Positions 3,978 through 48,126 of a DNA stretch of 64,000 nt are shown one piece after another. Position numbers and translations under genes: made by a program. This DNA is from Oikopleura dioica. Its lineage: Eukaryota; Animalia; Chordata. The notes under the pieces were generated by a model. It searched no databases and had not been told where the DNA came from. It was given only the letters and a program-made list of their open reading frames with translations. Positions within the stretch are counted from its first letter, which is position 1; each line of letters begins with the position of its first letter. Where the stretch lies: contig OU015568.1 of the NCBI GenBank assembly GCA_907165135.1, positions 10,664,001 to 10,728,000 of the forward strand, in the 5' to 3' direction.

Positions 3978-4928
3978 TTAACGACTGAGGGATTCTTGAT
4001 TCGCATTATTCGGTTTCGCTGAACGTTGAGTTTGATCTTTGGAAAGCTAAAGTCTTAATACCTGCAGAAAGCTAAGGTCAGCATTGGGATCGATCATCGC
4101 TACTTGTTCTTTGAGGTATTGATGGATGTTGAGGGCGATGAGTGAGTGATAGTATGGATGGTCCCCTCGCTTCGACCTTGACAGGCTCGATGTGCCTGAT
4201 AAACTTTGGGAGAGGCGTGCCTTTTTCCAGCGGATCAGCTTCTGCGCGGTAAAGATACAATATCCAAGCGCAGCAGAGGTGAAACAACCGACGGATGTGA
4301 ATGATGCATAGGCGGCTAGAATTTGATAGCTTTTCGGACACTTGAGGAGTGTTTTACCTTTCGTCGAAACAGTTCCAACCACGAACGTATTGAAGAAGTA
4401 GACGGACATTCCCACGGAGATACAGTTACAAACAACTGATAAAAGCGACAAAAGCGGGGCAACAACGGAGTCGAGGGTGAACAGTCGCTCGAATGTGAAC
4501 ATGACGAAGCCGATGACAGCACAAAGAATTGGGACACTAGAGTTCTTGATAATTTCATTATAAAATTTTATAGTTACCATTCAAGGGCAATACTGAGGTT
4601 TAGAAATTGATCTTCAAGCTCTAGTTTCAACGAGACAAGGGAGATTTTGACGACGGAAATGACGAACAAGGTTGTTGACAGGACCAACGTAAGGTTAACG
4701 TATCTCTTCACCATTTTGTGGGTGAATTTGTAGAATCTGTTTTCTAGGGTTTGTTTGACAATCTAGTCGACTTCCCTCTACGTATATAACCTCGTGTGCA
4801 CCGAGCGTGAAAGCAGTAAAAATTTTGATTTTATGACTTTCCGGGATGAAAATTAACGAGTAAGGGAGGAGCTCAAACAGGGACCGACACAATTGGAACT
4901 CTTTTAGGTCAATTTTCCCTCCGGTCAT
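3978..4928 (-). CDS. Multi-pass membrane protein of unknown family
   Basis: ORF 4047-4580 has 3-4 hydrophobic segments. There is an upstream hydrophobic exon near 4590-4700 and a short last exon ending near 3978. Exon structure is approximate. Confidence 0.5.
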
Positions 4929-5090
4929 GTGATTCCCTGATTGATAAGTTAGAGGCTGATTTTCCGAGTAATTAGGGCTTTTTGATCATGAATGCATGTT
5001 TATTGCTATTGCGGTTATTTTGATAAGAAGGATTAATTACAGACATGTACAGTATCAAAGCATAAAATAGGTCAGTTTGTCAGGATAAGG

Positions 5091-6340
5091 TTAATTGGAG
5101 TTTAGCCTAATTCCGATACGCTGTGAGGCCTTCGAAGGAATTTCACCAGTTTTTGAACGGACAATTACTCGGAATCGGTAACCAACACCTGGCATCAACC
5201 CTAAATTAAGTTTTTGTAACGTAAAAATGTGACGAAAATTCCGTACCGGTGACGATGTGAACATTCTGGTCGATCTTGTCAGAAACGTCTGTCCATGCCT
5301 GATTCTCATTCGATCGAACCTGAAGACGATAGAGACATCCAGGACCGGCATCTTAAAATAATTAAGAGCTTGAAAGGAGCTTGGTTTACCTTTCCAAGTA
5401 AGCCAGATTTTCCCATCGACTTCTCGAAGCGTATACGGAGCACCTGGACGATCAGCAGCCTGGGGCTTCCTCCTTTGATCACTCTCGAATGTCAACGGAC
5501 CTCCTCGTTGAGGAACGTCTTCTGAGTCGTGTCCTTTATTTCGCATCCTCAGATTTGTCTAAGGTACTTTAGTTGAAAGAAAGAAAGAAAGAAAGATAAT
5601 TGAGATTAATGATTGCGAAGATAATTAGTTTCTATCATGATTGATAACTCAGACAATAGCTCTCACCTTTGTCTTCTGAGAAGGATATGTAGGTAGAGCA
5701 GAATCAACAGATGACCCTCGCCTAAAAGCGAGTCTACGTCTTCCTGCAGAGTCATCAGATTGCTTTTCCGTACTGCTTTGATGTTTAAGTATTCCCTACA
5801 AAAGTATTCAGGCATCGTAAATTATTCGCGCACGTACCTTTAACCGCGGATGTTCACTTCGATCTTCTACAGGTGCACGATTTTTGCTCTTTCTTCGTGG
5901 TGGCTTAGCAGGTGCCTGGCGATAGGTCTCGGGGTCAGAGTCCGAACTGCTCTTGCTATTGTCTAAGGATCGACCTCGGTTTAGGGTGCCTCGTGTTCGT
6001 GGCTTCTTGACTTTTCTTTCTGGAGTTGGAACGACGAAAGTTTGCATAGGTTCATTTCGAAGCATTTGGTCTTCAAAGCTCACTTGTTTTCTCCACCCAG
6101 CATTTTTAACAGGAGCGTTTGAACGAACAATTGTCGGGGTGAAAGTCTAAGATTCATACTTGATTTCAAAAGTTCAAACGAAATATTACCTTTGGTAATT
6201 GAGGGACTTTCTTGGTAGAAAATATATTTCTCATTTCTTTATCGTTTCCGTTAACCTTTTGATCTTCTTGAGATTCTCTGGATTGATCGATACTTCTTGA
6301 GGATTTCAGAGGGCTCCGCAGCGAAAAATTATCTGCTTGC
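5091..6340 (-). CDS. Low-complexity region plus one fibronectin type III domain; possibly the 3' end of the obscurin-like gene
   Basis: ORF 5091-5546 has FN3 signatures (PGAP..LTW..L.PGVGYRFRV..S.PSKAS). Upstream exons at 5650-5790, 5808-6083 and 6190-6340 are linked by GT-AG introns. No clear start codon of its own. Confidence 0.6.
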
Positions 6341-7199
6341 GCTTGTCAACAAGTGGTAGAATTTATATGTTTAAGTGACGTGGAGGCCAACTGAAGTTGA
6401 AGACCAGTAAATCCCGGGGTTCAAACTCGTGATTTCTATCTCTCTATTTTCTAAAGCTCTTCCGAAAGATGGATAACTCTGAGACTGAGAGTTGTGAAAC
6501 CTTTCTCAGTGTATGTCTCCTAATCTGAGGACGTGGACCTAAACCCGTAGCTACGGTAAATAATTCATCAAAATGTGACCGCACCCGTGGACGTGGGGAT
6601 TACAAAACGTGGCGTTTTATAAGCTGCGAAGTAGAATGAAAAAGCACATTAGCTGAGCATATAAACTTTGAAATATGTGACAGCTGTAGAACACACTTTG
6701 ACCTTACATTATTGCCGATGAGCAAATTTTGACAAAAATAACTATGAATAATTAATTTATGATCGCTTTCTTCTCGCAATCGAAATCATAGAAGAGAACT
6801 CAAAAAACCTTTCCTAGAATTTGAAGTATCTTCTTGTGCATCATCGAGTTGTCTTTTGTGGCGTTCAAGCACGAGTATCATGAGGCAGAGTGGAATCAGA
6901 CCAACTGTCATGATAAAAATTATAAAACCGATCATTGTTTAATGTCACGATGTTTTTGGTGGAACTCGATAGACACTAGACCTGGGATCAACAAGTTGCT
7001 CACTGAAGAGAAAAAGCTTATAAGCCTGATAATAGAACATGGAGAAGACCATGTCGTTTACTTTATGATCCAGTACTTATCGCTTTTATGCTCGCCCATG
7101 AAATCTTTATCTCTACAATTTCCTCCGTTCGCGATGGAGAAAAAGACGAACTGGCTGGAAAAGTGCATTATCGAGTTCTTTTATTAGACGCCGCTGTCA

Positions 7200-10100
7200 A
7201 AGTTATAAATCTATACGTGTAGCACAAACCAGTGTGCTTAAAACGCTTCCTGTGGGAGGTCTCGATGACTGACGGTGACTCTGCCGAACTGCTGAGGCTG
7301 ATCATGCTACCAACAGGTGTTGGTGAGGTGATTGAAATATTCGGAATATCCAGTGATTCTGGCCACGTGATCGTTGGTGTCAGGCCGTATTCCTTCTCCA
7401 GATCGCTGAGTAAAAGTGAAAGTGTTGAAAGGATTTAAAGCAGGTGATATACCGTAGCTCCTGTGCTAGTTCCTCCTCTTCTGCATCTTCTTCTGAGTCA
7501 GATGAGTCAGACAAAGATGTTAATGCTGAGCGTTTAGCTAATGCTGTTGGATTCTGGTCGATTTCATTAATGATATCATGGATTCTTCGAGGTTCTAGAT
7601 GGCTGCTAGAGCAGCTTCGTTTCCTATTGTATCTGAAATTAAATTTGCGTAAATATTTAATTTAAATCCTGGACTTGCCTTTGTCGCGTGAAAAAGTATT
7701 TAAGTTTTTTCGAGTCAATAGTATTTTCGTCAGAAAACTCGAGGGTTGAGACATCTTCGGCGATTTCACTGATTGATGGCCGCTTATGGGCCTCGCGAGT
7801 GAGACACTGAAGAACGAGGTCTTGAGCTGTCTTCGATAGTTTGCCATTCATCTCAGCCTTGAGTTTCTCGTGATCGTTAGTTTGAATGTTCTTCAAAGTT
7901 TCTTTATCTGTTCTTCCTTGGAATGGAGACTCGCCGGTAAGGAGAATGGAGAGAAGAATTCCGGATGAGAAGACATCGCTGGAACAGTCGACGGGCATGC
8001 AACTCGCAACTTCTGGTGAGCAAAATTCAGGCACTGCACGATCTAACGGTTCCAAGAAATCATCTTGAACTTCCCTTGCATTTCCAAATCCAATGATGAT
8101 CAGCCTCCTATGATTTGCTGCCAACAACAAGGACTCACTTCGCAAATCCAAGTGCGCAATCGATTTTGAGTGCAGAAATTCTAGTGCATTGCAAATCTGT
8201 TCAAAGAAGAACATCACTCGCGATTCCGAATATTTTCCTTCGTCAATCAGTTTTTGAAAGAGATTTCCACCGGAGATCCACTCTGTTACCAAGACTAGAC
8301 TTTCGAGGGTATGATATCCGGCGATAAAACGGACAACGTTCACATGGTTCAATTGCTTTAGAATGATGGTTTCCTGGTTTCGTTCACAAACTTATTTTAG
8401 CAAAAACTTTCTCCTTAGATTTTCGAAATTGACTCGTAATTTCCATTATCTGTGAACGCAGTGCCTGTCTAATGCCCGTTTTGTCGACACTTTTCCGGCA
8501 AACGGATTTCAGCGCCACTTCGACGCCACTTTTGCGCTCGCTCGCACGTTTCACGATACTATAACTTCCTCGACTCGTGATACCGCTGTGAATGCGGTAT
8601 TCTTCTTTCAGTAGGTCGTAGTTTCTTTCCAAGTTCGATTTCTCCAGCGAAAGGTCTGCTTTACATTCGGCTTGGCCAACTGCGTTGCTGGCGTAGCATG
8701 CGATTGTGCCCTGAAATCAACGCTCGATCGGGACTTTTTTGGTTCGTGTACCTGTGTGACCCAGTTTGATAAAATAAGAGTCGACTCGCCATTAGCAGAG
8801 GAAGTAATTTCCACGTTTTTATCGCCCAGAAGGAAGGCACGGTCGTTAAGGGACCATCGTATCACCGCTTTAAAGTTTTTATTCGTTATCTATATTTTTC
8901 TTTTACCTTGCGGGTTTGATTTGACGCTCACAAAAAATTTTGCTGTGCCACCGATTGGAATCGTTACGTCTTCAACGATTTGGTCGAAGGCAGGCGTCGC
9001 TTGAGAGGAAATTCTGGAGCGAATATCTGTATGGTTGAGTTTGATAACGTTGACAACGCATCTGGACTCGACTATTCCAACATTGTTTACAACTCGACCA
9101 ATGTACGCGCCGTGGTCTTGCTGAAGAATCGGTTCTATGATCAGATCGTACTGATTTCGAAATGACGATATTTTCATCCTCTTTGTTTCTGTCAGCTGAT
9201 CTCCATTTTTATAAAAAGAAACAGGGCCACCAGTCGCTTCCATTGAAAGAACAAGACGAGATCCTTCATTGACTGTAGTATTGCTGAGTCTACGAAGAAT
9301 CTCTGGTTTCTGTGGCAAGGCCTGATTTTCAAATTCAAGATTATGTTGTAAGTCTAAATATTTATATACTCTTTCGCGAGAGGTTAATGCACTTTCGCGG
9401 GTATATTTGAAGCAAAATATTGCCTTATCCAAAATAAGTTTTAATAAAAATTCGAGAAATTGGGAAACGAGATTATTTAGAAACCACGCGCATATTTCCG
9501 TGTAAATACAGCAGATTCTGAGTCCAATTTGAGAAACGGTGGAAAGTTGATTAGGCGAATTTGGAGTAAGTTGGTTAGTATTCTTGAACTTTTCCTTGAC
9601 GTAGCTGGGTCTAATCGAGCGCCCGTGTTCAGTATCAGTGTCGTCGCTGAGATAGAGGTCAGAGCGGGAACAGTACTCGTCACAAGAGCTCAGTAAATCG
9701 GGCATGGCGGGCGGCCTCATCGCATGTTCCACTACTACATGACAAGCTCGATAAGCGCTTCCTTTGTAGTTATACACTGATATTGCATACTCGCCACCAT
9801 GTTCCATCGCGGCCTGTTTTTGTTTCAATGAAATTTTCCTCGTGATCAAAAAACTCGGGAACTTTGAAACTTTCCTGGTTGACAAACAGGTTCCATTTTC
9901 CGTTGCAAATTTTTCTTATTTGATAGCCATTTTGCCCGCTTGTAAGCATGTTCCCTTCACGAAACCACTTCACGTCGGGCTCAGGAACACCTAGACATTC
10001 TAAAGAGGCTGGCGGGTATTTTTCTAAAATACCTGTGACCTCACAAGAAAGTGATAACGATGAGAGAAGAGGAATATGCATCGGGCCTTTGTTGAAGAAT

Positions 10101-13100
10101 GATATCTTGGGCAAGGACTCGGCAAGATCGTCTGAGGAGGCTTTTGCAATCTGATTATTAGAGTGACACTTCCGAAAGAATGGGGTTAAAAGCATCAAAC
10201 CATTCGAAGCCTTTCCTTCTACTTCCGTGTCTGAACCGCCACCAGCAGTTAGATATTCTTCATCTGTTGTTGTCATGTTGCTCACGTTAGATGGTGTTCG
10301 TCTCACAGAAACCTACGAAATATGCTCAGTTGTTTCGAATTGACGTTTTCCCTCGTACCTTCAAATTTACATCTGAATCGTACGCTTCGTTAGAAGTCAT
10401 ATATTCCGAATCAGAACAAAAGGAGTTCCTCTTCATTTCATCAGAACCTCCAGGAATCAGAAGCTTATCCGGCGGAGTTGGTGATTCGCGGGGACTGGCA
10501 GTCGGTGTCTCCATGCAGGCACTTTCATATCCACCAGAATAATATTCAGAATCCGTGGGACTTGGTGCCCGACGTGAGCGGTATTCCAAAGGCGGGGCAC
10601 AGTAGCTTGGGGAGATTCTTGCGATTTCTGGTTGTTGTGGGGCAAAAATCTTTGCTCGAGGAACTGGAATTGGTTCCGGAAGATGAGGTGGATCAACTTT
10701 GTGAAGAGACTGATCAGACGTTGATGACGATTCCGTTGAATCAGCCTTGTCTACAGGGAGAATACAGAACTGACGCAAAAATCTAATGATAAGCCAGAGT
10801 TATCTGTATCCCTGCCCAAGCTGTTGCCAAATGTAGGTGCCAGGCGTCGCTGCTTCATTTGTGTCTTGACGTCGGCCAGTGTTCGTTGGTTTTTTTCTAA
10901 GTGCGTGGTAAAATTTTATTGCAAAATGAGCATGTTACCTAGGGAGCCATTACTAGGACTTCTGGTGCTTAATGACGTATCTGCTGGGAGCCTTGGACTA
11001 GACAGGGCTCAATTTGTGTTTTCTAGTACACATAATTATCCGACCGCTACCGTAATACAAGGTTATTTCCCTTGTCAGAAGCTATTTATAGAGCCCAGTC
11101 CTAGGACGCTGAGGCGTTACCCTCGTCAAGGACGGAGGAACTACCGGCGGAAGACTAGTCAAAGACTCGGGACGGGACTTCGGAGAGTTAAAAGAAAGCA
11201 CATTCGCCTTGCTTGAAACGGATCCATGCGGATTTTCGGCAAGTATTTCGTAAAGCCCAGTGGGCGTCTTTGATGATTTCAAAAAACTTTTTGCGGAGCC
11301 GGAAATCATGAAAAAAGTGCTAGTGCAGTTTTGTCAGGCTCGTCGAGACGAGTCGATTGGTATACGTCACTCTTGAAAATTTTAAGGATTTACCGGTTAA
11401 CCGGCTGATTACCGGAAATCACGCTGTCAGCTCCCGTTTTTGTTCTAGTCGTCGGATTTGTATGTTTGAAGCGTCAAAATGATCCTTATGATCAGGGCTT
11501 CTGTAGCCTCCGAGATGAGACCCATATCTCAACTCCTGCCGAGCTTATCACTAAAAGTTTGATTTTTACGCACTTTTTGCAGTTTGAAAGTTCATAACGT
11601 AAAATTTGTACGGTAAATACTAATAAATCTTCTTCGGTTTTGATAGACAATTGAAAATTAATAATACCCATCGTTCAAAACCTTGTAACCAGCCGGTAAA
11701 AAAGCCCTGAATCAAAATTATGCCCTCAAAGACCACTTTTTTGATTATATTCACCAAGATATGTGAATTTCAGGAAATTTAAATTATTCTAGTGATGATT
11801 TTTCGGAGATAAGGGATATAATGATGAAAATGCGCTTTTACGCAACTTCAGCGGCTAAATGAAGTGCAGAGGACTCCAGCGACACAAGTTAAACTACCAA
11901 TAAGTGCGAGAAGAAGACTTCGCTATAAAAAGGCTCAGAAAATGCGGACTTAGGTATTTAGATCGGTATTCAATTTTTGACCGAGTCTTATCACTGACTT
12001 CTTTGAAGAAACAAATTATGTATGAATAAATAAATGATGTGAGTGAGAATTACGGGGAAGCTTTCAGTTCGAGCGGGGTCTTATAGTCGACAGTCCAGCC
12101 AGATTTTTCGTACTTGATTCTACATTTTAATTCTCGGCAAGCCGGTCATCTATTTTTGTTAATTAAACCAACTGTGAGAGATCTAAGCCTGCACGATTAT
12201 GAGTACTGCTAGAAATCACGAGTTAGTTAGAAAGACTCATGGATCTAATGAGAATATTCATCACCTGATTCCTGGCATAGAGGGCTCGAAGCTTTATAAT
12301 TTATTTAGCATCAACATTAGAATAATTTAAATTTCCTGAAATTCACATATCTTGGTGAATATAATCAAAAAAGTGGTCTTTGAGGGCATAATTTTGATTC
12401 AGGGCTTTTTTACCGGCTGGTTACAAGGTTTTGAACGATGGGTATTATTAATTTTCAATTGTCTATCAAAACCGAAGAAGATTTATTAGTATTTACCGTA
12501 CAAATTTTACGTTATGAACTTTCAAACTGCAAAAAGTGCGTAAAAATCAAACTTTTAGTGATAAGCTCGGCAGGAGTTGAGATATGGGTCTCATCTCGGA
12601 GGCTACAGAAGCCCTGATCATAAGGATCATTTTGACGCTTCAAACATACAAATCCGACGACTAGAACAAAAACGGGAGCTGACAGCGTGATTTCCGGTAA
12701 TCAGCCGGTTAACCGGTAAATCCTTAAAATTTTCAAGAGTGACGTATACCAATCGACTCGTCTCGACGAGCCTGACAAAACTGCACTAGCACTTTTTTCA
12801 TGATTTCCGGCTCCGCAAAAAGTTTTTTGAAATCATCTTTGCTGTTTTGTGCAGTTGGCTTTGGGTCATGATCGGTTCGTCATCGTCGTCCTTGTAGAAT
12901 GTGACCACCGGAGCGGGATAGCCTAAGACCTCGGCTCTCAGAACAAAACCGCCGGTTTCGTCTAGTGTTACATCACGCATTGGAAGTGGGAAATATGGCT
13001 TCGGAGAGTTCTTCGTCTTTTATTTGGTTTGCGAGATTTTTCTCGCTAGCGTAATTTGTATTTTATCAATAATATCCATTTGCTTTTTCTATAAACATCT

Positions 13101-13856
13101 ACATGTAAAATCCTAAAAAGCAAATTACCTACTTCCTGATTGAACTTTTCTTTGAAATGTAGGCCTCTGTCGTTTACGATTATGTAAATCATACTCGAAC
13201 ATGTTCTTGTAATAACAAACCTTTTCCTTTGGATTGTTGTCCATTACAATTTCCGTTCGTTGGGTGAACACTGGTCGCGCGCCACTTCGGCGAATTGATA
13301 ATTCAATTTTAACCAAATACTTTTGTCCTGAAAATTCTGTGTTTCGACGCCTTGTTCTTCCTCGGTCGGTGCCGATAGAACGGTTACTCCTAGGCGGTGT
13401 TGGAAAAAATAGTCACTTAGCACTTGAATCTTTGCTTTTTGTTGCCTTCAACAATCTCTAAAAGTTCCATCACCATTCCTACTACTTCTTCCACTTCTAA
13501 GCGATTCGTTATCACGCATTGATCCAGCATCATCCTTCGAATCGCCGCGGAAAAGTTTTTTCAATCGGTTGATGCTCGTATCTCGGAAAGACTTTCGCGA
13601 TCCCGTCTCCGAGTTTCGATCGAATCCTAGGACCGCGGATTTTTTTTCAGGGAAGAAAAATTTGAATTTACCAGAATTGAGTGTTGATGTGGAGCCGGAT
13701 TTGACCAATTGTCCCGGCTCCGTTGATTGAACGGATGGAGGGCGGTTGGTACTCTTGTCCTCTTTTTTGCTTAAAAATGTTCGCGAAATTTTAAAGTTTA
13801 TCGGGTGCTATAACAAAAATCGTATCCGGAGTAAGCTTGTTTATGAAAGTCTGCAT
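7200..13856 (-). CDS. Obscurin/UNC-89/SPEG-like protein: several Ig I-set domains and an MLCK-family kinase-like domain
   Basis: Ig motifs at 12845-12980 joined to 11190-11270, at 9900-10050, at 9050-9300 (HGAYIGRVVNNVG) and at 8800-9000. Kinase exons at 8470-8620 (GSYSIVK..VALK) and 7657-8352 (HLDLRSES, SPEV, TGESPFQG). Further acidic/Ser-rich exons at 7230-7630. Both ends are approximate. Confidence 0.8.
11273..12836. mobile_element. Non-autonomous foldback DNA transposon, 1564 bp, with 519-bp terminal inverted repeats
   Basis: 11273-11791 is the reverse complement of 12318-12836 (no mismatch seen by eye), with a 526-bp spacer. Direct repeats CTTTG flank it at 11268-11272 and 12837-12841. 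No transposase ORF. Confidence 0.95.
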
Positions 13857-17259: not shown

Positions 17260-20200
17260 TTAAACGGCAATTTGTGTTGGAGGGTTGACGTCCTGAAGAA
17301 GAATTTCAATCTTGTGTCGAAGGTCTCGTGAGGTCGGCCGGAGTTCGGCATTCTCTTCCCAGCAAGCTAACATCAAGCTGTGCATTTCTTGCAATTCCGG
17401 GAAATCACAATTATCTGGCGGAGGCAGTCGCCAGCCGGAGAGTACTGCGTCCACAAGTTGTCTCCTGCTAAGTCCCCAGAAGGGCACAGACGTATTTCGA
17501 CAGCAAACCGACCACATGAGGACACCGAGCGCCCACACATCGGACATTTGTGAGAAGATACCCTTTGTGAAAACTTCAGGTGCACTGTTTCGTAATGGAA
17601 TGTAGCCGGAAAGTTCATCGGTTCCACGATTGCTCACGATGTCAAGAACTGGTTCGACATCTGTTTTGCTCGAAAGTTTGATCTTGAAGGTGTTTCCAGC
17701 TACCAAGACAGTATCCACACCCAAATGTCGCAGGATAAATTGGTTCGTATGAAGATAGGCAACTCCACAAGCAATCTGCTTCGAAATGGCAACGGGGTGC
17801 ATGGTTGGTCCCTCAGTAGCGAAATACTCAGCTAGGTTAGACTCGCACATTTCCATCACAACGAGTTTGGGATAATTGGCGGTCATAAATCCTTCGATCC
17901 GTAAGGTGTTCGGTTGATCCAATTGAGCCATGATCTTAAGCTCGTTGAGTTGTTCCTCCGTAGTGACCAAAAGCTCCTTAATGGCCACTGGTCTTCCGTA
18001 TAATTTTCCCGCCGAGATTTTCCCAAGTCGTCCAGATTTCAACGTCACGTCAATCGTGAGTGAGTCACGTGGAAGTTCGCCAGTTCCTTCTAGGATGCTC
18101 GCTTGACGAGAGCAGGGGACGAGGTCGACAGTGCCACTGATAGTCCCATGCCCGTTATTTGCATGGCTCGAAGTTGTAACCACAGAAAACTGCTCTATCG
18201 AGGATCGAGTGCCTTTTAGCCACTGAGGGTCGCCTCGTTTGCGGTAAAGTACGACCGCGATGACAAGTAAAGTGAGAGAAAAGAGGATCGCACCCGTGAT
18301 GATGCCAGCCAGCCACTGAGTGGTCGTCGAAGAGCCCCTCTTATACGGTCGTAGCAATACATCATCTGTCGTTTTGAATCGGATTGACTCAGACCAGTTC
18401 GAAGCTGAAATGCCGGGCGCAAGTTCAGAGTCGGGATGAACACGGACACGAGCTGAGTATTGAACTAGCGGTTGTAATTTGTCCAGCACAAAGGTAGACT
18501 CAGCGGTTTCAATAATTCTTTTGAGGCGGATGTTTGAAAGCTCTTCTATCAGCTCGATTTCGATCTTTTTCTGCCTTCTGCTGCTGGATGTTCTTCAAAG
18601 AAAAGGAGGAAATCAGCAGAATCGTGCGCTAAAAATTAAATATGAATATTTTTCACTCATCTTTTATAAAGCATTTGCATGAAGAACTTTTTCGCACGTA
18701 CCGAGTGACAATAGTCGCAGGTTTTTAACGACCAAGCGGTTTGGAATTGTTCGGGCGAGGGTGACCGCAATCTTCTTGGTGGTATAGCCAGCTTCTAAGG
18801 CGCTTTCTGAGGCGGCGTTTTCACTTTGAACCTCAAAGCGATATTCTTTGCTCCGATCCAAATTGGCGAGTTCTACTTCCGTGCGGTCGATTGTGCCGGT
18901 TGGTAAATCTACGTTTATGCAGGGCATGCAAGAGGACTCTTCCGCACACTCGCTGCACAAAACGCGATAGACGGTTTCATCTCCTATTCTTGGCCGTTTC
19001 CAGGATAGAAGTACATTCGTCGAATTCAAACTCTGGGCTCGGAGATTCTCGACTGGACCAGGAAGTGCCAGGCACGGGCCTGCTGACCCAGCGCGGAAAT
19101 GGCCGCTCTCACACGTGCAATCCTTTGATCCTGGGCGCGACGAGGAGTTTCGCGGACATCGTTGGCACTGACCGCGGCCGGGCGAAGACTTGTATGTACC
19201 AGCAGGGCATTCTGAAATTATTGCGTTATTACGAGTAGACACTAGAAAGTGGCATTTTCAAAAAACGAAAGGGTCTTCCAAGAGGCGAGTTAATTAAAGT
19301 CCTGTCACGGGTCGGACAAGCTCATTAGCGCGTAAAGAAGTTCCGAGCTTCTAAAAGAAATTCCGAAGCTGTAAGCTAACAAATGTTATTTTTACACCAT
19401 ATTTAGGCGGTGTCTAAATAGTCGATTTTCGGGGTGATTTCTAATCTGCTGGATTTTGATAACGCCGCGTCAAAATTGAAGAAGCGCCACTTCCGCCGAA
19501 AAAGGAGGCTGGTGAGAATGGTTGGGTAAATTCCACGACGCAAGTGCTCCCAAAATCCGCAAGCTATAACGCTATAAATGCTCCTCCCAACTCACAACAA
19601 GTAATTATCACTTGCATTTGCTGACGCCGCTTTTGGACCCGCTGCGCCCGCAAAGAAAACATTAGAAAGAAAAGGCGTTCTATTTTGGATTTGACGTCTA
19701 TTTCCGATATAAATCCACATGACAGCGAACTTTTGCATAAATTCTTGCAAATTCCAAATTTCTAATCTGAGGACAAAAGACTCTAGAATTTCCGCCGAGG
19801 ATGTGCGCCCAGCCCATTGTTGAATAGATAGGAAATGGGATACTCGATTGCCAAAAGAGGGTACTCTATTCATGCATTATCTTTGCGGTTAGATTGTTAC
19901 CTAAGCATTTTTGGCCGTCGTCGTCGCCCTGGTAGCCAGATTTGCAATTGCAGGAAGCAGAAGAGAGTCGCCAGAAACCATCTGATCCGCAGTGATAAGA
20001 AGGTTTGTCTCCTTAATTTAATGCACGATTAATAATCAAGTTTTAAACGAAGACACGTGATTTTTACTTTTAGTATGGTACTTGTGCTCTAAGTACTCTA
20101 AACAGGGCGCGTCGCGAGAAAAATCAACGCGGCGGAGGTCTGTTGCCCCAACACATGTGACAAAGAAAAACAACTTTACCGTTTTGAATTGCGTTTTCTA

Positions 20201-29901: not shown

Positions 29902-30280
29902 TCTTCTATGTCTTCTTTCTAAGGGTCTCTGTTAAGTGTCTTCTATACAAATCTTTCTCAGTAGTAATTATTTATAGTAAAAAAGGTTGAGGATTTCGAG
30001 GATTCGACGGGCAAATTCCGAGCGGCGGGGCGAGAGGGAGGACCGCCGTAGAGCGCCGAAAAGCTACTGAGCGCCCTCATTTTCGCGCCTCGGCGGGGTG
30101 GAGCGCAAAACGCGCCGCAACTATCGTAAACCGATAGAAGTAATTTGCCTAATTAATGATCTATTTGGTCCGTCAATAAACCTAATGCATCTTGCTGCTT
30201 CTCAGATGGACAAAAGTTTTCGAGACACTTGAAAAGGTTAATTCAGTTTTTAAAGAGGGAGTATTTGGCGTGGAACCCAG

Positions 30281-30940
30281 ATGATTTCAAAAATTTCGCG
30301 GGCCTGGAAATCGTCAAAAAACTTCTTGTCTAGTTTTGAAGAGCTCGTCGAGACGAGTCGAATGATATATAAAACTCCAGATAGTTTTAAGATTTTCCGC
30401 CAAAAGTGATAAGAAGGTGTCTTATCAAAAATTTTCTGACCGGCGCCGTTTTTGTTCTAGAAAAGCTGAGGTGATGCTTGACCCCGGAAAATGATCCTCA
30501 TGGTCTTGTCTATTCCGGCAAAAATTTCAGCTCGCCCTCACATATCCTGCTGTGCATATCAGCGAAAAATCAAAAAATAGTGCATTTTGTTGTCGCTGCA
30601 CGTTCCTAGTTTCATACCCATTTATAGTCCCATTTTCCTTGGAAAATGAAATTTAACGATAAACTCGGCTGGGTAAATGATGACGAGCTGAAATTTTTGC
30701 CGGAATAGAACAGCCCATGAGGATCATTTTCCGGGGTCAAGCATCACCTCAGCTTTTCTAGAACAAAACGGCGCCGGTCAGAAAATTTTTGATAAGACAC
30801 CTTCTTATCATTTTTTGGTGGAAAATCTTAAAACTATCTGGAGTTTTATATATCATTCGACTCGTCTCGACGAGCTCTTCAAAACTAGTCAAGAAGTTTT
30901 TTGACGAATTCTGGGCCCGCGAAATTTTTTTTTAAATCAT
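30281..30940. mobile_element. Foldback MITE, 660 bp, same family as 11273-12836
   Basis: Imperfect inverted arms 30281-30534 and 30684-30940. Direct repeats CCCAG at 30276-30280 and 30941-30945. Shares the ATGATTT terminus, GCTCGTCGAGACGAGTCGA, GTTTTGTTCTAG and AAAATGATCC with the larger element. Confidence 0.92.
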
Positions 30941-47633: not shown

Positions 47634-48126
47634 TCAGGCGAATACATCGTCATCCTCTGATGGGAACTCGGCGTAGCTTTTATCTTGCGCGAGCTTGAGC
47701 CTGTTTGCCTAGGAGGAAATATGTTGACTCTTGTGCTTTTAAAGTGCTTTTGATACCGTCGCAAGGGCAGTCAGCGCGTCCTCGTGGTTTTCCATAGACA
47801 TGTGAACGAGGCCGAGGTAGTGATGGGCATTGAAGTTGGATGGGCAAATGCTGATGAATTCCTGAGCATCTGTAAGTGCTTGATTCATGTCACCTTGCTT
47901 CATGGAACTTTTTCACGGTGAGAATTTGAAGCTTTCGAAAGTTGATATCATGGAAGACTAATCTTCAAATTTCACCGTCCCAGAGGATCTTACCAGAGCA
48001 GAACATACTTGGATCGACAGGAGAATTCAACAAAGCTTCCGAGAAACTTTCTCGAGCTTGACGATAATTTTTCGCCTCGTAATGCTCTTTACCAATTTTA
48101 TGTAATTTTTCAAAGATATCTTGCAT
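47634..48126 (-). CDS. TPR-only CHIP paralog lacking the coiled coil and U-box (may be a pseudogene)
   Basis: MQDIFEKLHKIGKEHYEAKNY..., MKQGDMNQALTDAQEFISICPSNFNAHHYLGLVH..EDALTALAT|ANRL. Aligns to the neighbouring CHIP TPRs and shares its phase-0 intron after AL.T. Stop at 47634-47636. Confidence 0.7.

Follow-up and report, generated by a model that had tools for sequence, protein, structure and literature searches.

An apparently very young foldback transposon insertion in a constrained exon of an Ig-repeat and kinase gene of Oikopleura dioica

We analysed a stretch of 64,000 nt of Oikopleura dioica DNA (contig OU015568.1; hereafter the window), in which a foldback transposon lies within a coding exon of a gene for a protein with immunoglobulin (Ig) and kinase domains. 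Our results are probably best accounted for by an ordinary insertion allele of very recent origin, which on the haplotype carrying it truncates a gene under constraint and which is absent elsewhere in the genomes that were read. A preliminary description of the locus had presented the element as a candidate introner that could be removed as an exact AT-AG intron. This headline is not supported by the sequence: the donor lacks a G at +1 and the splice sites would lie in or beside a duplex of 528 bp. The same description offered a recent disruptive allele as its other option, which fits all our findings.

The foldback element and its family

Comparison of inverted repeats within the window revealed two arms of 528 nt each, rather than the 519 initially given, that are 100% complementary and separated by 510 nt (Table 1). 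The identity of the arms indicates that the insertion is very young, in agreement with the preliminary description. The element is flanked by a duplicated target, which reads CTTTG on the forward strand; the sixth base agrees too, by chance. The limits of the duplication can be drawn in two ways. Since a G precedes all the ends of the family that can be read (8 of 8), the element most likely starts with GATGATTT and duplicated 3 bp of target, TTT here and CCA in the second copy. Alternatively, the duplication may span 5 bp of the form C-NNN-G, here CTTTG. The empty site is identical in both cases. The element measures 1,564-1,566 nt, with ends GATGATTT...AAATCATC, and the whole insert including one target copy reaches approximately 1.57 kb.

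Neither the arms nor the loop encode a transposase: the largest open reading frame (ORF) has 59 aa and no Pfam match. A search of the element against Rfam gave 0 family matches, and the fold of the loop is not beyond chance (z = 0.69). Given its target duplication, its terminal inverted repeats and its multi-copy family, the element is a non-autonomous, foldback or MITE-like DNA transposon.

Table 1. Features of the insertion, of the host gene and of the second foldback copy, in positions of the window.
Feature	Position	Strand	Remarks
Left target copy, CTTTG	11268..11272		or 3-bp TTT at 11269-11271, with G11272 as base 1 of the element
Left foldback arm, 528 nt	11272..11799		carries the family 19-mer
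Loop, non-repeated, 510 nt	11800..12309		protein, RNA-family and fold tests all without match
Right foldback arm, 528 nt	12310..12837		100% complementary to the left arm
Right target copy, CTTTG	12837..12841		from the duplication and the empty-site joint in X2
Smaller foldback copy, 660 nt	30278..30940		GATGATTT ends, 19-mer, duplicated CCA/CCCAG target
Interrupted exon, 5' half (TKNSPKPYFPLPMRDV...HKTAK)	12837..13016	-	start at 13016 predicted
Interrupted exon, 3' half (TPTGLYEILAENPHG...PPSLTR)	11121..11267	-	donor AGG|GTAACG predicted
Upstream intron, GA-AG, AAG|GAAAAG...AAAAG|ACG	13017..13226	-	predicted from sequence
Downstream intron, GT-AG, phase 0	10770..11120	-	predicted from sequence
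Protein kinase domain, same gene, downstream of the insertion	7660..8391	-	Pkinase, 2.6e-38

The smaller copy, the only other full one in the window, shares several inner blocks with the element in the exon, and no recognisable coding exon was found around it. Approximately 65 nt inside each end, both window copies carry an invariant 19-mer, GCTCGTCGAGACGAGTCGA. A scan of metagenome contigs for this word retrieved five marine contigs whose terminal 90-95 nt are 80-85% identical. We located it at 11338-11356, 12753-12771, 30343-30361 and 30857-30875 in the window, and also in the contigs L004, L006, L014, L016 and L017. It holds a short hairpin and is unchanged in all copies of the family, even where the ends are only 80% alike; it is likely to be a transposase-binding site. 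The same word occurs in tandem, with a spacing of approximately 181 nt, in the metagenome contigs L003, L008, L009, L015, L021 and L022. These are otherwise dissimilar to the element and are probably unrelated repeats.

The abundance of the family can be seen in the DNA run X2, where depth reaches 4,500-12,700 over the terminal 100-200 nt of the element, compared with 55-500 over its interior and 56 over single-copy flanks. Depth over the ends is thus 80-220 times that of a single copy. The foldback family is multi-copy and its members are alike mainly at their ends. To our knowledge, the combination of GATGATTT ends, 19-mer and duplication of 3 or 5 bp does not fit the hallmarks of hAT, P, Tc1/mariner, piggyBac, CACTA or Drosophila FB elements. 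Judged by these features, the family is unclassified, and its matches place it in marine metagenomes.

The interrupted exon and its empty sites

When 1,569 nt (the element and one target copy) are deleted in silico, the flanks join into a single open exon of 327 nt on the minus strand, which reads ...HKTAK|TPTGLY... (more fully, ...EPIMTQSQLHKTAK|TPTGLYEILAENPHG...). This bears out the earlier statement that such a removal restores the frame. In the filled form, this frame continues as ...HKTAK MISKNFLRSRKS and reaches a stop after 12 extra codons (ORF 12798-12980). We placed the start of the exon at 13016 from the in-frame AAAAG|ACG, where the next four codons differ only synonymously from those of L001, a genomic contig from a Logan assembly. 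The next exon begins after TGCGTCAG|, in phase 0. Between the window and L001, the exon shows a dS of 0.42 and a dN of 0.035. The resulting dN/dS of 0.08 identifies it as constrained coding sequence, and the substitution pattern clearly points to strong purifying selection.

The assignment of the exon to an Ig I-set domain, which the preliminary description regarded as rebuilt by the removal, is weaker than was implied there. The alignment to the I-set profile (positions 19-88) includes one stretch that crosses the insertion junction, but the match of the intact exon of the relative to Pfam PF07679 is below threshold (18.3 bits for a gathering cut-off of 23.7). A single-sequence AlphaFold model of the rebuilt domain has a pLDDT of 40, too poor for judging the fold. 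In the neighbouring exons of the gene, Pfam clearly identifies an I-set domain, as well as a protein kinase domain that is closest to the kinases of DAPK2, twitchin, MLCK4 and titin. A search among 1.84 billion protein representatives retrieved nothing beyond ORF fragments from genomic sequence and distantly related titin-like proteins, and the protein collections searched held no transcript-derived ORF of this gene that spans the junction. By analogy with its Ig domains and its DAPK/twitchin/MLCK/titin-like kinase, the host is plausibly a muscle gene.

Two observations concern the neighbourhood of the exon. The predicted downstream intron (10770-11120, 351 nt) is 95% identical to that of L001, whereas synonymous sites in the flanking exons differ by 21-32%. 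An intron more conserved than silent coding sites may contain a functional element; an ORF of 130 aa on the opposite strand (10824-11216) overlaps it. Upstream of the gene, the minus strand at 17263-19257 has long open stretches with a cysteine-rich segment (CPAGTYKSSPGRGQCQRCP...) that resembles a region of Eph-receptor type and probably belongs to a separate gene.

The insertion site is empty in three other sequences. Run X2, which comes from another individual, yielded a 1,474-nt contig of single-copy depth (56) in which position 11266 is followed directly by 12836. Exactly 1,569 nt are missing from it; there are 6 ambiguous letters at the joint and 19 single-nucleotide differences from the window. 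Contig L001 is colinear through the site and lacks the element, while being 91.5-94.2% identical over 3.5 kb, introns included. The same colinearity and absence are found in L002, a marine-metagenome contig from ENA. Because these three independent empty sites are exact, the insertion is derived, exonic and not universal. Together with the uninterrupted conserved frame, they bear out the initial view that the transposon landed in a coding exon and not in an older intron. A word-index protein search with the downstream junction ORF gave a single cluster with two members, both of them empty-site genomic contigs (L001 and L002).

We then asked where the filled allele is present. The share of sampled words was 0.90 in data set X1 and 0.37-0.59 in X2 to X7. 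The value expected in the absence of this copy is approximately 0.65, and X2 to X7 are at or below it; X1 is probably the source sample. The junction ORFs of the filled allele had no match in any other assembly searched, and no direct record of this allele was found outside the present one. In the data that were read directly, the filled allele appears confined to the haplotype of this assembly, and it looks rare.

The fate of the filled allele

The explanation that we favour starts with a recent jump of a non-autonomous foldback transposon into a constrained exon of a gene encoding Ig repeats and a kinase of CaMK type. On the carrier haplotype, the short flanking introns would be spliced normally and the insert would stay in the mRNA. 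Translation would run 12 codons into the element and then meet a stop, leaving a product that lacks the kinase domain and the downstream Ig domains. Such a truncation would make the allele a loss-of-function or a strongly hypomorphic one, presumably tolerated through its rarity and a probable heterozygosity, and not through splicing out of the insert. Two points temper this explanation. It is mildly surprising to meet a null allele of a constrained gene in the single animal sequenced, except in the heterozygous state. Moreover, introns without GT may be helped by stems in this genome, and a hairpin element might be handled better than textbook rules would have it.

Re-initiation of translation within the insert is conceivable from the sequence. 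Both ends of the element read ATGATTTC (11309-11268 on the minus strand for the end in question), which supplies the insert with an ATG close to its 3' end. This ATG is in frame with the downstream half of the exon and opens an ORF reading MISGSAKSFLKSSK-TPTGLY....

We aligned to 3,101 letters of the locus the reads of the DNA run X2 and those of three bulk oligo-dT RNA runs (X20-22), whose labels give the same species. Depth over the exon in the RNA runs was 0-3 reads per bin, with no joints, a depth that is unusable for splicing. Nearly all the RNA reads were partial matches, at less than 95% identity, to the conserved ends of the element. Their loose ends match the subfamily of the metagenome contigs L006 and L014 and not this copy. 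These runs probably represent a different lineage; alternatively, their expression of the gene is very low.

The junctions at the edges of the insert read GCAAAG|ATGATT and ATCATCAAAG|ACG on the gene strand, as first described. As a result of the short target repeat, the insert can be cut in seven equivalent registers that lead to the same mRNA. A terminal AG is found in just one of these, whose first two bases are AT. Hence, scar-free excision could only be of the AT-AG kind: no GT, GC or GA donor gives exact removal, and the register starting with AG ends in AA, not in AC or AT. In an introner, the element and its target duplication supply both donor and acceptor; here the acceptor AG is present and the donor is AT. 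Nor does exact excision combine a 3' AG with the G at +1 that is common to the GA-AG and GC-AG types of O. dioica. The stem occupies the would-be intron from position +1 to 5 nt short of the acceptor. Transcription of the second arm would therefore leave the donor, along with the branch/pyrimidine region, in double-stranded RNA. In general, an intron that has A in place of G at +1 together with a 3' AG fails at the second catalytic step of splicing, for which these sites are a particularly poor pair. Taken at the level of sequence, these features argue against the AT-AG intron. A GA-AG reading of the end of the element was also tried and rejected: the reading frame would be displaced by one base, and the AG|GAA context described for the species is absent (PMC7072748).

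It remains to consider whether the transcript could be rescued in part by imprecise splicing, which we regard as unlikely. A GC-AG intron could combine the same acceptor with the donor ACA|GCAAAG, located 6 nt further upstream; its product would be in frame and lose Ala-Lys. Alternatively, the whole exon of 327 nt could be skipped: it has phase 0 at both ends, so that the frame would be kept at the cost of one Ig-like domain. Imprecise splicing of transposons from host transcripts has long been known in maize and Drosophila, and GC-AG is a known intron type in O. dioica. Against the former product, the GC donor is weak, as it lacks the exonic AG and has A at +5. Against the latter, the skipped exon is strongly constrained, and the median intron length of 49 nt (PMC8008620) suggests that introns are recognised instead of exons, which would make exon skipping unlikely.

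The birth of an intron, in which the element and one target copy would be removed exactly as a polymorphic AT-AG intron by a spliceosome using the 528-bp stem, seems to us improbable. The removal would be in frame and without scar, the target duplication would supply the 3' AG, the stem would bring the junctions together, and the donor AAG|ATGATT agrees with GTGAGT at four of the six intronic positions. In the non-GT intron next to it, the terminal stem shows a compensating change when compared with the relative. There are also precedents: gains of introns by transposon insertion have been listed for Oikopleura (PMC3443670), and non-canonical introns derived from MITEs have been described for Fritillaria (PMC11282704, citing Henriet 2019). 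Yet A at +1 is absent from the types of odd introns named in O. dioica, which are dominated by GA-AG, followed by GC-AG, and whose GA donors are flanked by AG upstream and by A downstream (PMC7072748). The Fritillaria system is tied to lineage-specific duplications of U2AF and has AG-AC or AG-AT ends, not AT-AG (PMC13326754). In addition, the donor and the branch/pyrimidine region would be buried in the duplex where the neighbouring intron leaves 5 and 9 nt free. Finally, the allele looks rare, and no junction read was found in X20-22, although their exon depth is as low as stated above.

RNA structure may matter for the odd introns of this genome. In the apparent GA-AG intron upstream of the exon (13226-13017 on the minus strand), the bases +6 to +11, GGTTTG, pair with CAAACC located 10-15 nt before the acceptor. 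The same stem recurs in two independent relatives, L001 and L002, as AGTTTG/CAAACT: both of its sides have changed, and the outer pair has been preserved. This intron keeps its G at +1 and has 5 and 9 unpaired nucleotides at its junctions, unlike the foldback element. Elsewhere in the window (47908-47980), a hairpin of 73 nt has a stem that extends from a putative GG donor to 5 nt before a CAG, a register identical to that of the foldback element at 11272-12837.

That a long-read assembly created or misplaced the foldback, leaving it absent from this locus in the animal, is very improbable: perfect palindromes are a known type of long-read artefact and the filled junction was not found in the other data sets searched, but artefactual foldbacks copy local sequence, whereas this is a foreign element with ends typical of its family, a clean duplication and an exact empty site, and the word share in X1 requires a near-identical element sequence in that data set.

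Relation to known systems and implications

The favoured explanation, a young truncating allele, places the insertion next to the exonic insertion alleles of foldback and MITE transposons. Like these, it is bounded by terminal inverted repeats and a duplicated target, and other individuals have the exact site empty; it belongs to a multi-copy family that shares just its ends, lacks a transposase and brings a premature stop into the host frame. It differs from the named transposons of this kind in that its family is unclassified.

The resemblance with the introners of Micromonas, Aureococcus and other aquatic eukaryotes is less complete. According to the summary in PMC11282704, these too are DNA transposons with terminal inverted repeats and short target duplications that insert in exons, and the duplicated target could supply one of the splice sites. 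In the same account, introners have a working GT or AG and are spliced in hundreds of genes (Huff et al. 2016; Gozashti et al. 2022). Here, the end of the element gives AT, the element is approximately 10 times longer, the intron is only putative, and the sole other local copy lies outside any recognisable coding exon.

Among larvaceans, the MITE introns of Fritillaria borealis share with our case the type of host, intron ends that would pair through terminal inverted repeats, and dinucleotides other than GT (PMC13326754). They are mostly AG-AC or AG-AT, short and fixed, their splicing has been demonstrated, and they occur with duplicated U2AF subunits (Henriet et al. 2019; PMC13326754). The odd introns of O. 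dioica itself are closer, being from the same species, with an apparent GA-AG intron bearing a terminal stem directly upstream in the same gene. They keep a G at +1, and the neighbouring one leaves several unpaired bases at both junctions; excision of the foldback element would instead involve an A at +1 and a stem starting at the junction. Introns made by transposons have already been described in small numbers in Oikopleura (PMC3443670), in Fritillaria (PMC11282704, PMC13326754) and, as introners, in algae.

The locus provides a clean case of a constrained exon split by a transposon that inserted very recently and that the other genomes read do not have there, and it defines an unclassified foldback family that is present in marine metagenomes. 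Oikopleura has an unusually fast turnover of introns and many introns without GT. In the Okinawa assembly, non-canonical introns account for approximately 11% of the total (PMC8008620). Both the filled and the empty allele exist. If carriers of the former were to make a correctly joined mRNA, they would offer a direct view of the origin of an intron in a chordate and a gauge of the degree to which RNA structure can stand in for the sequence of splice sites. Precise removal, if true, would mean that newly landed hairpin transposons can be working introns at once, while still polymorphic, in a chordate.
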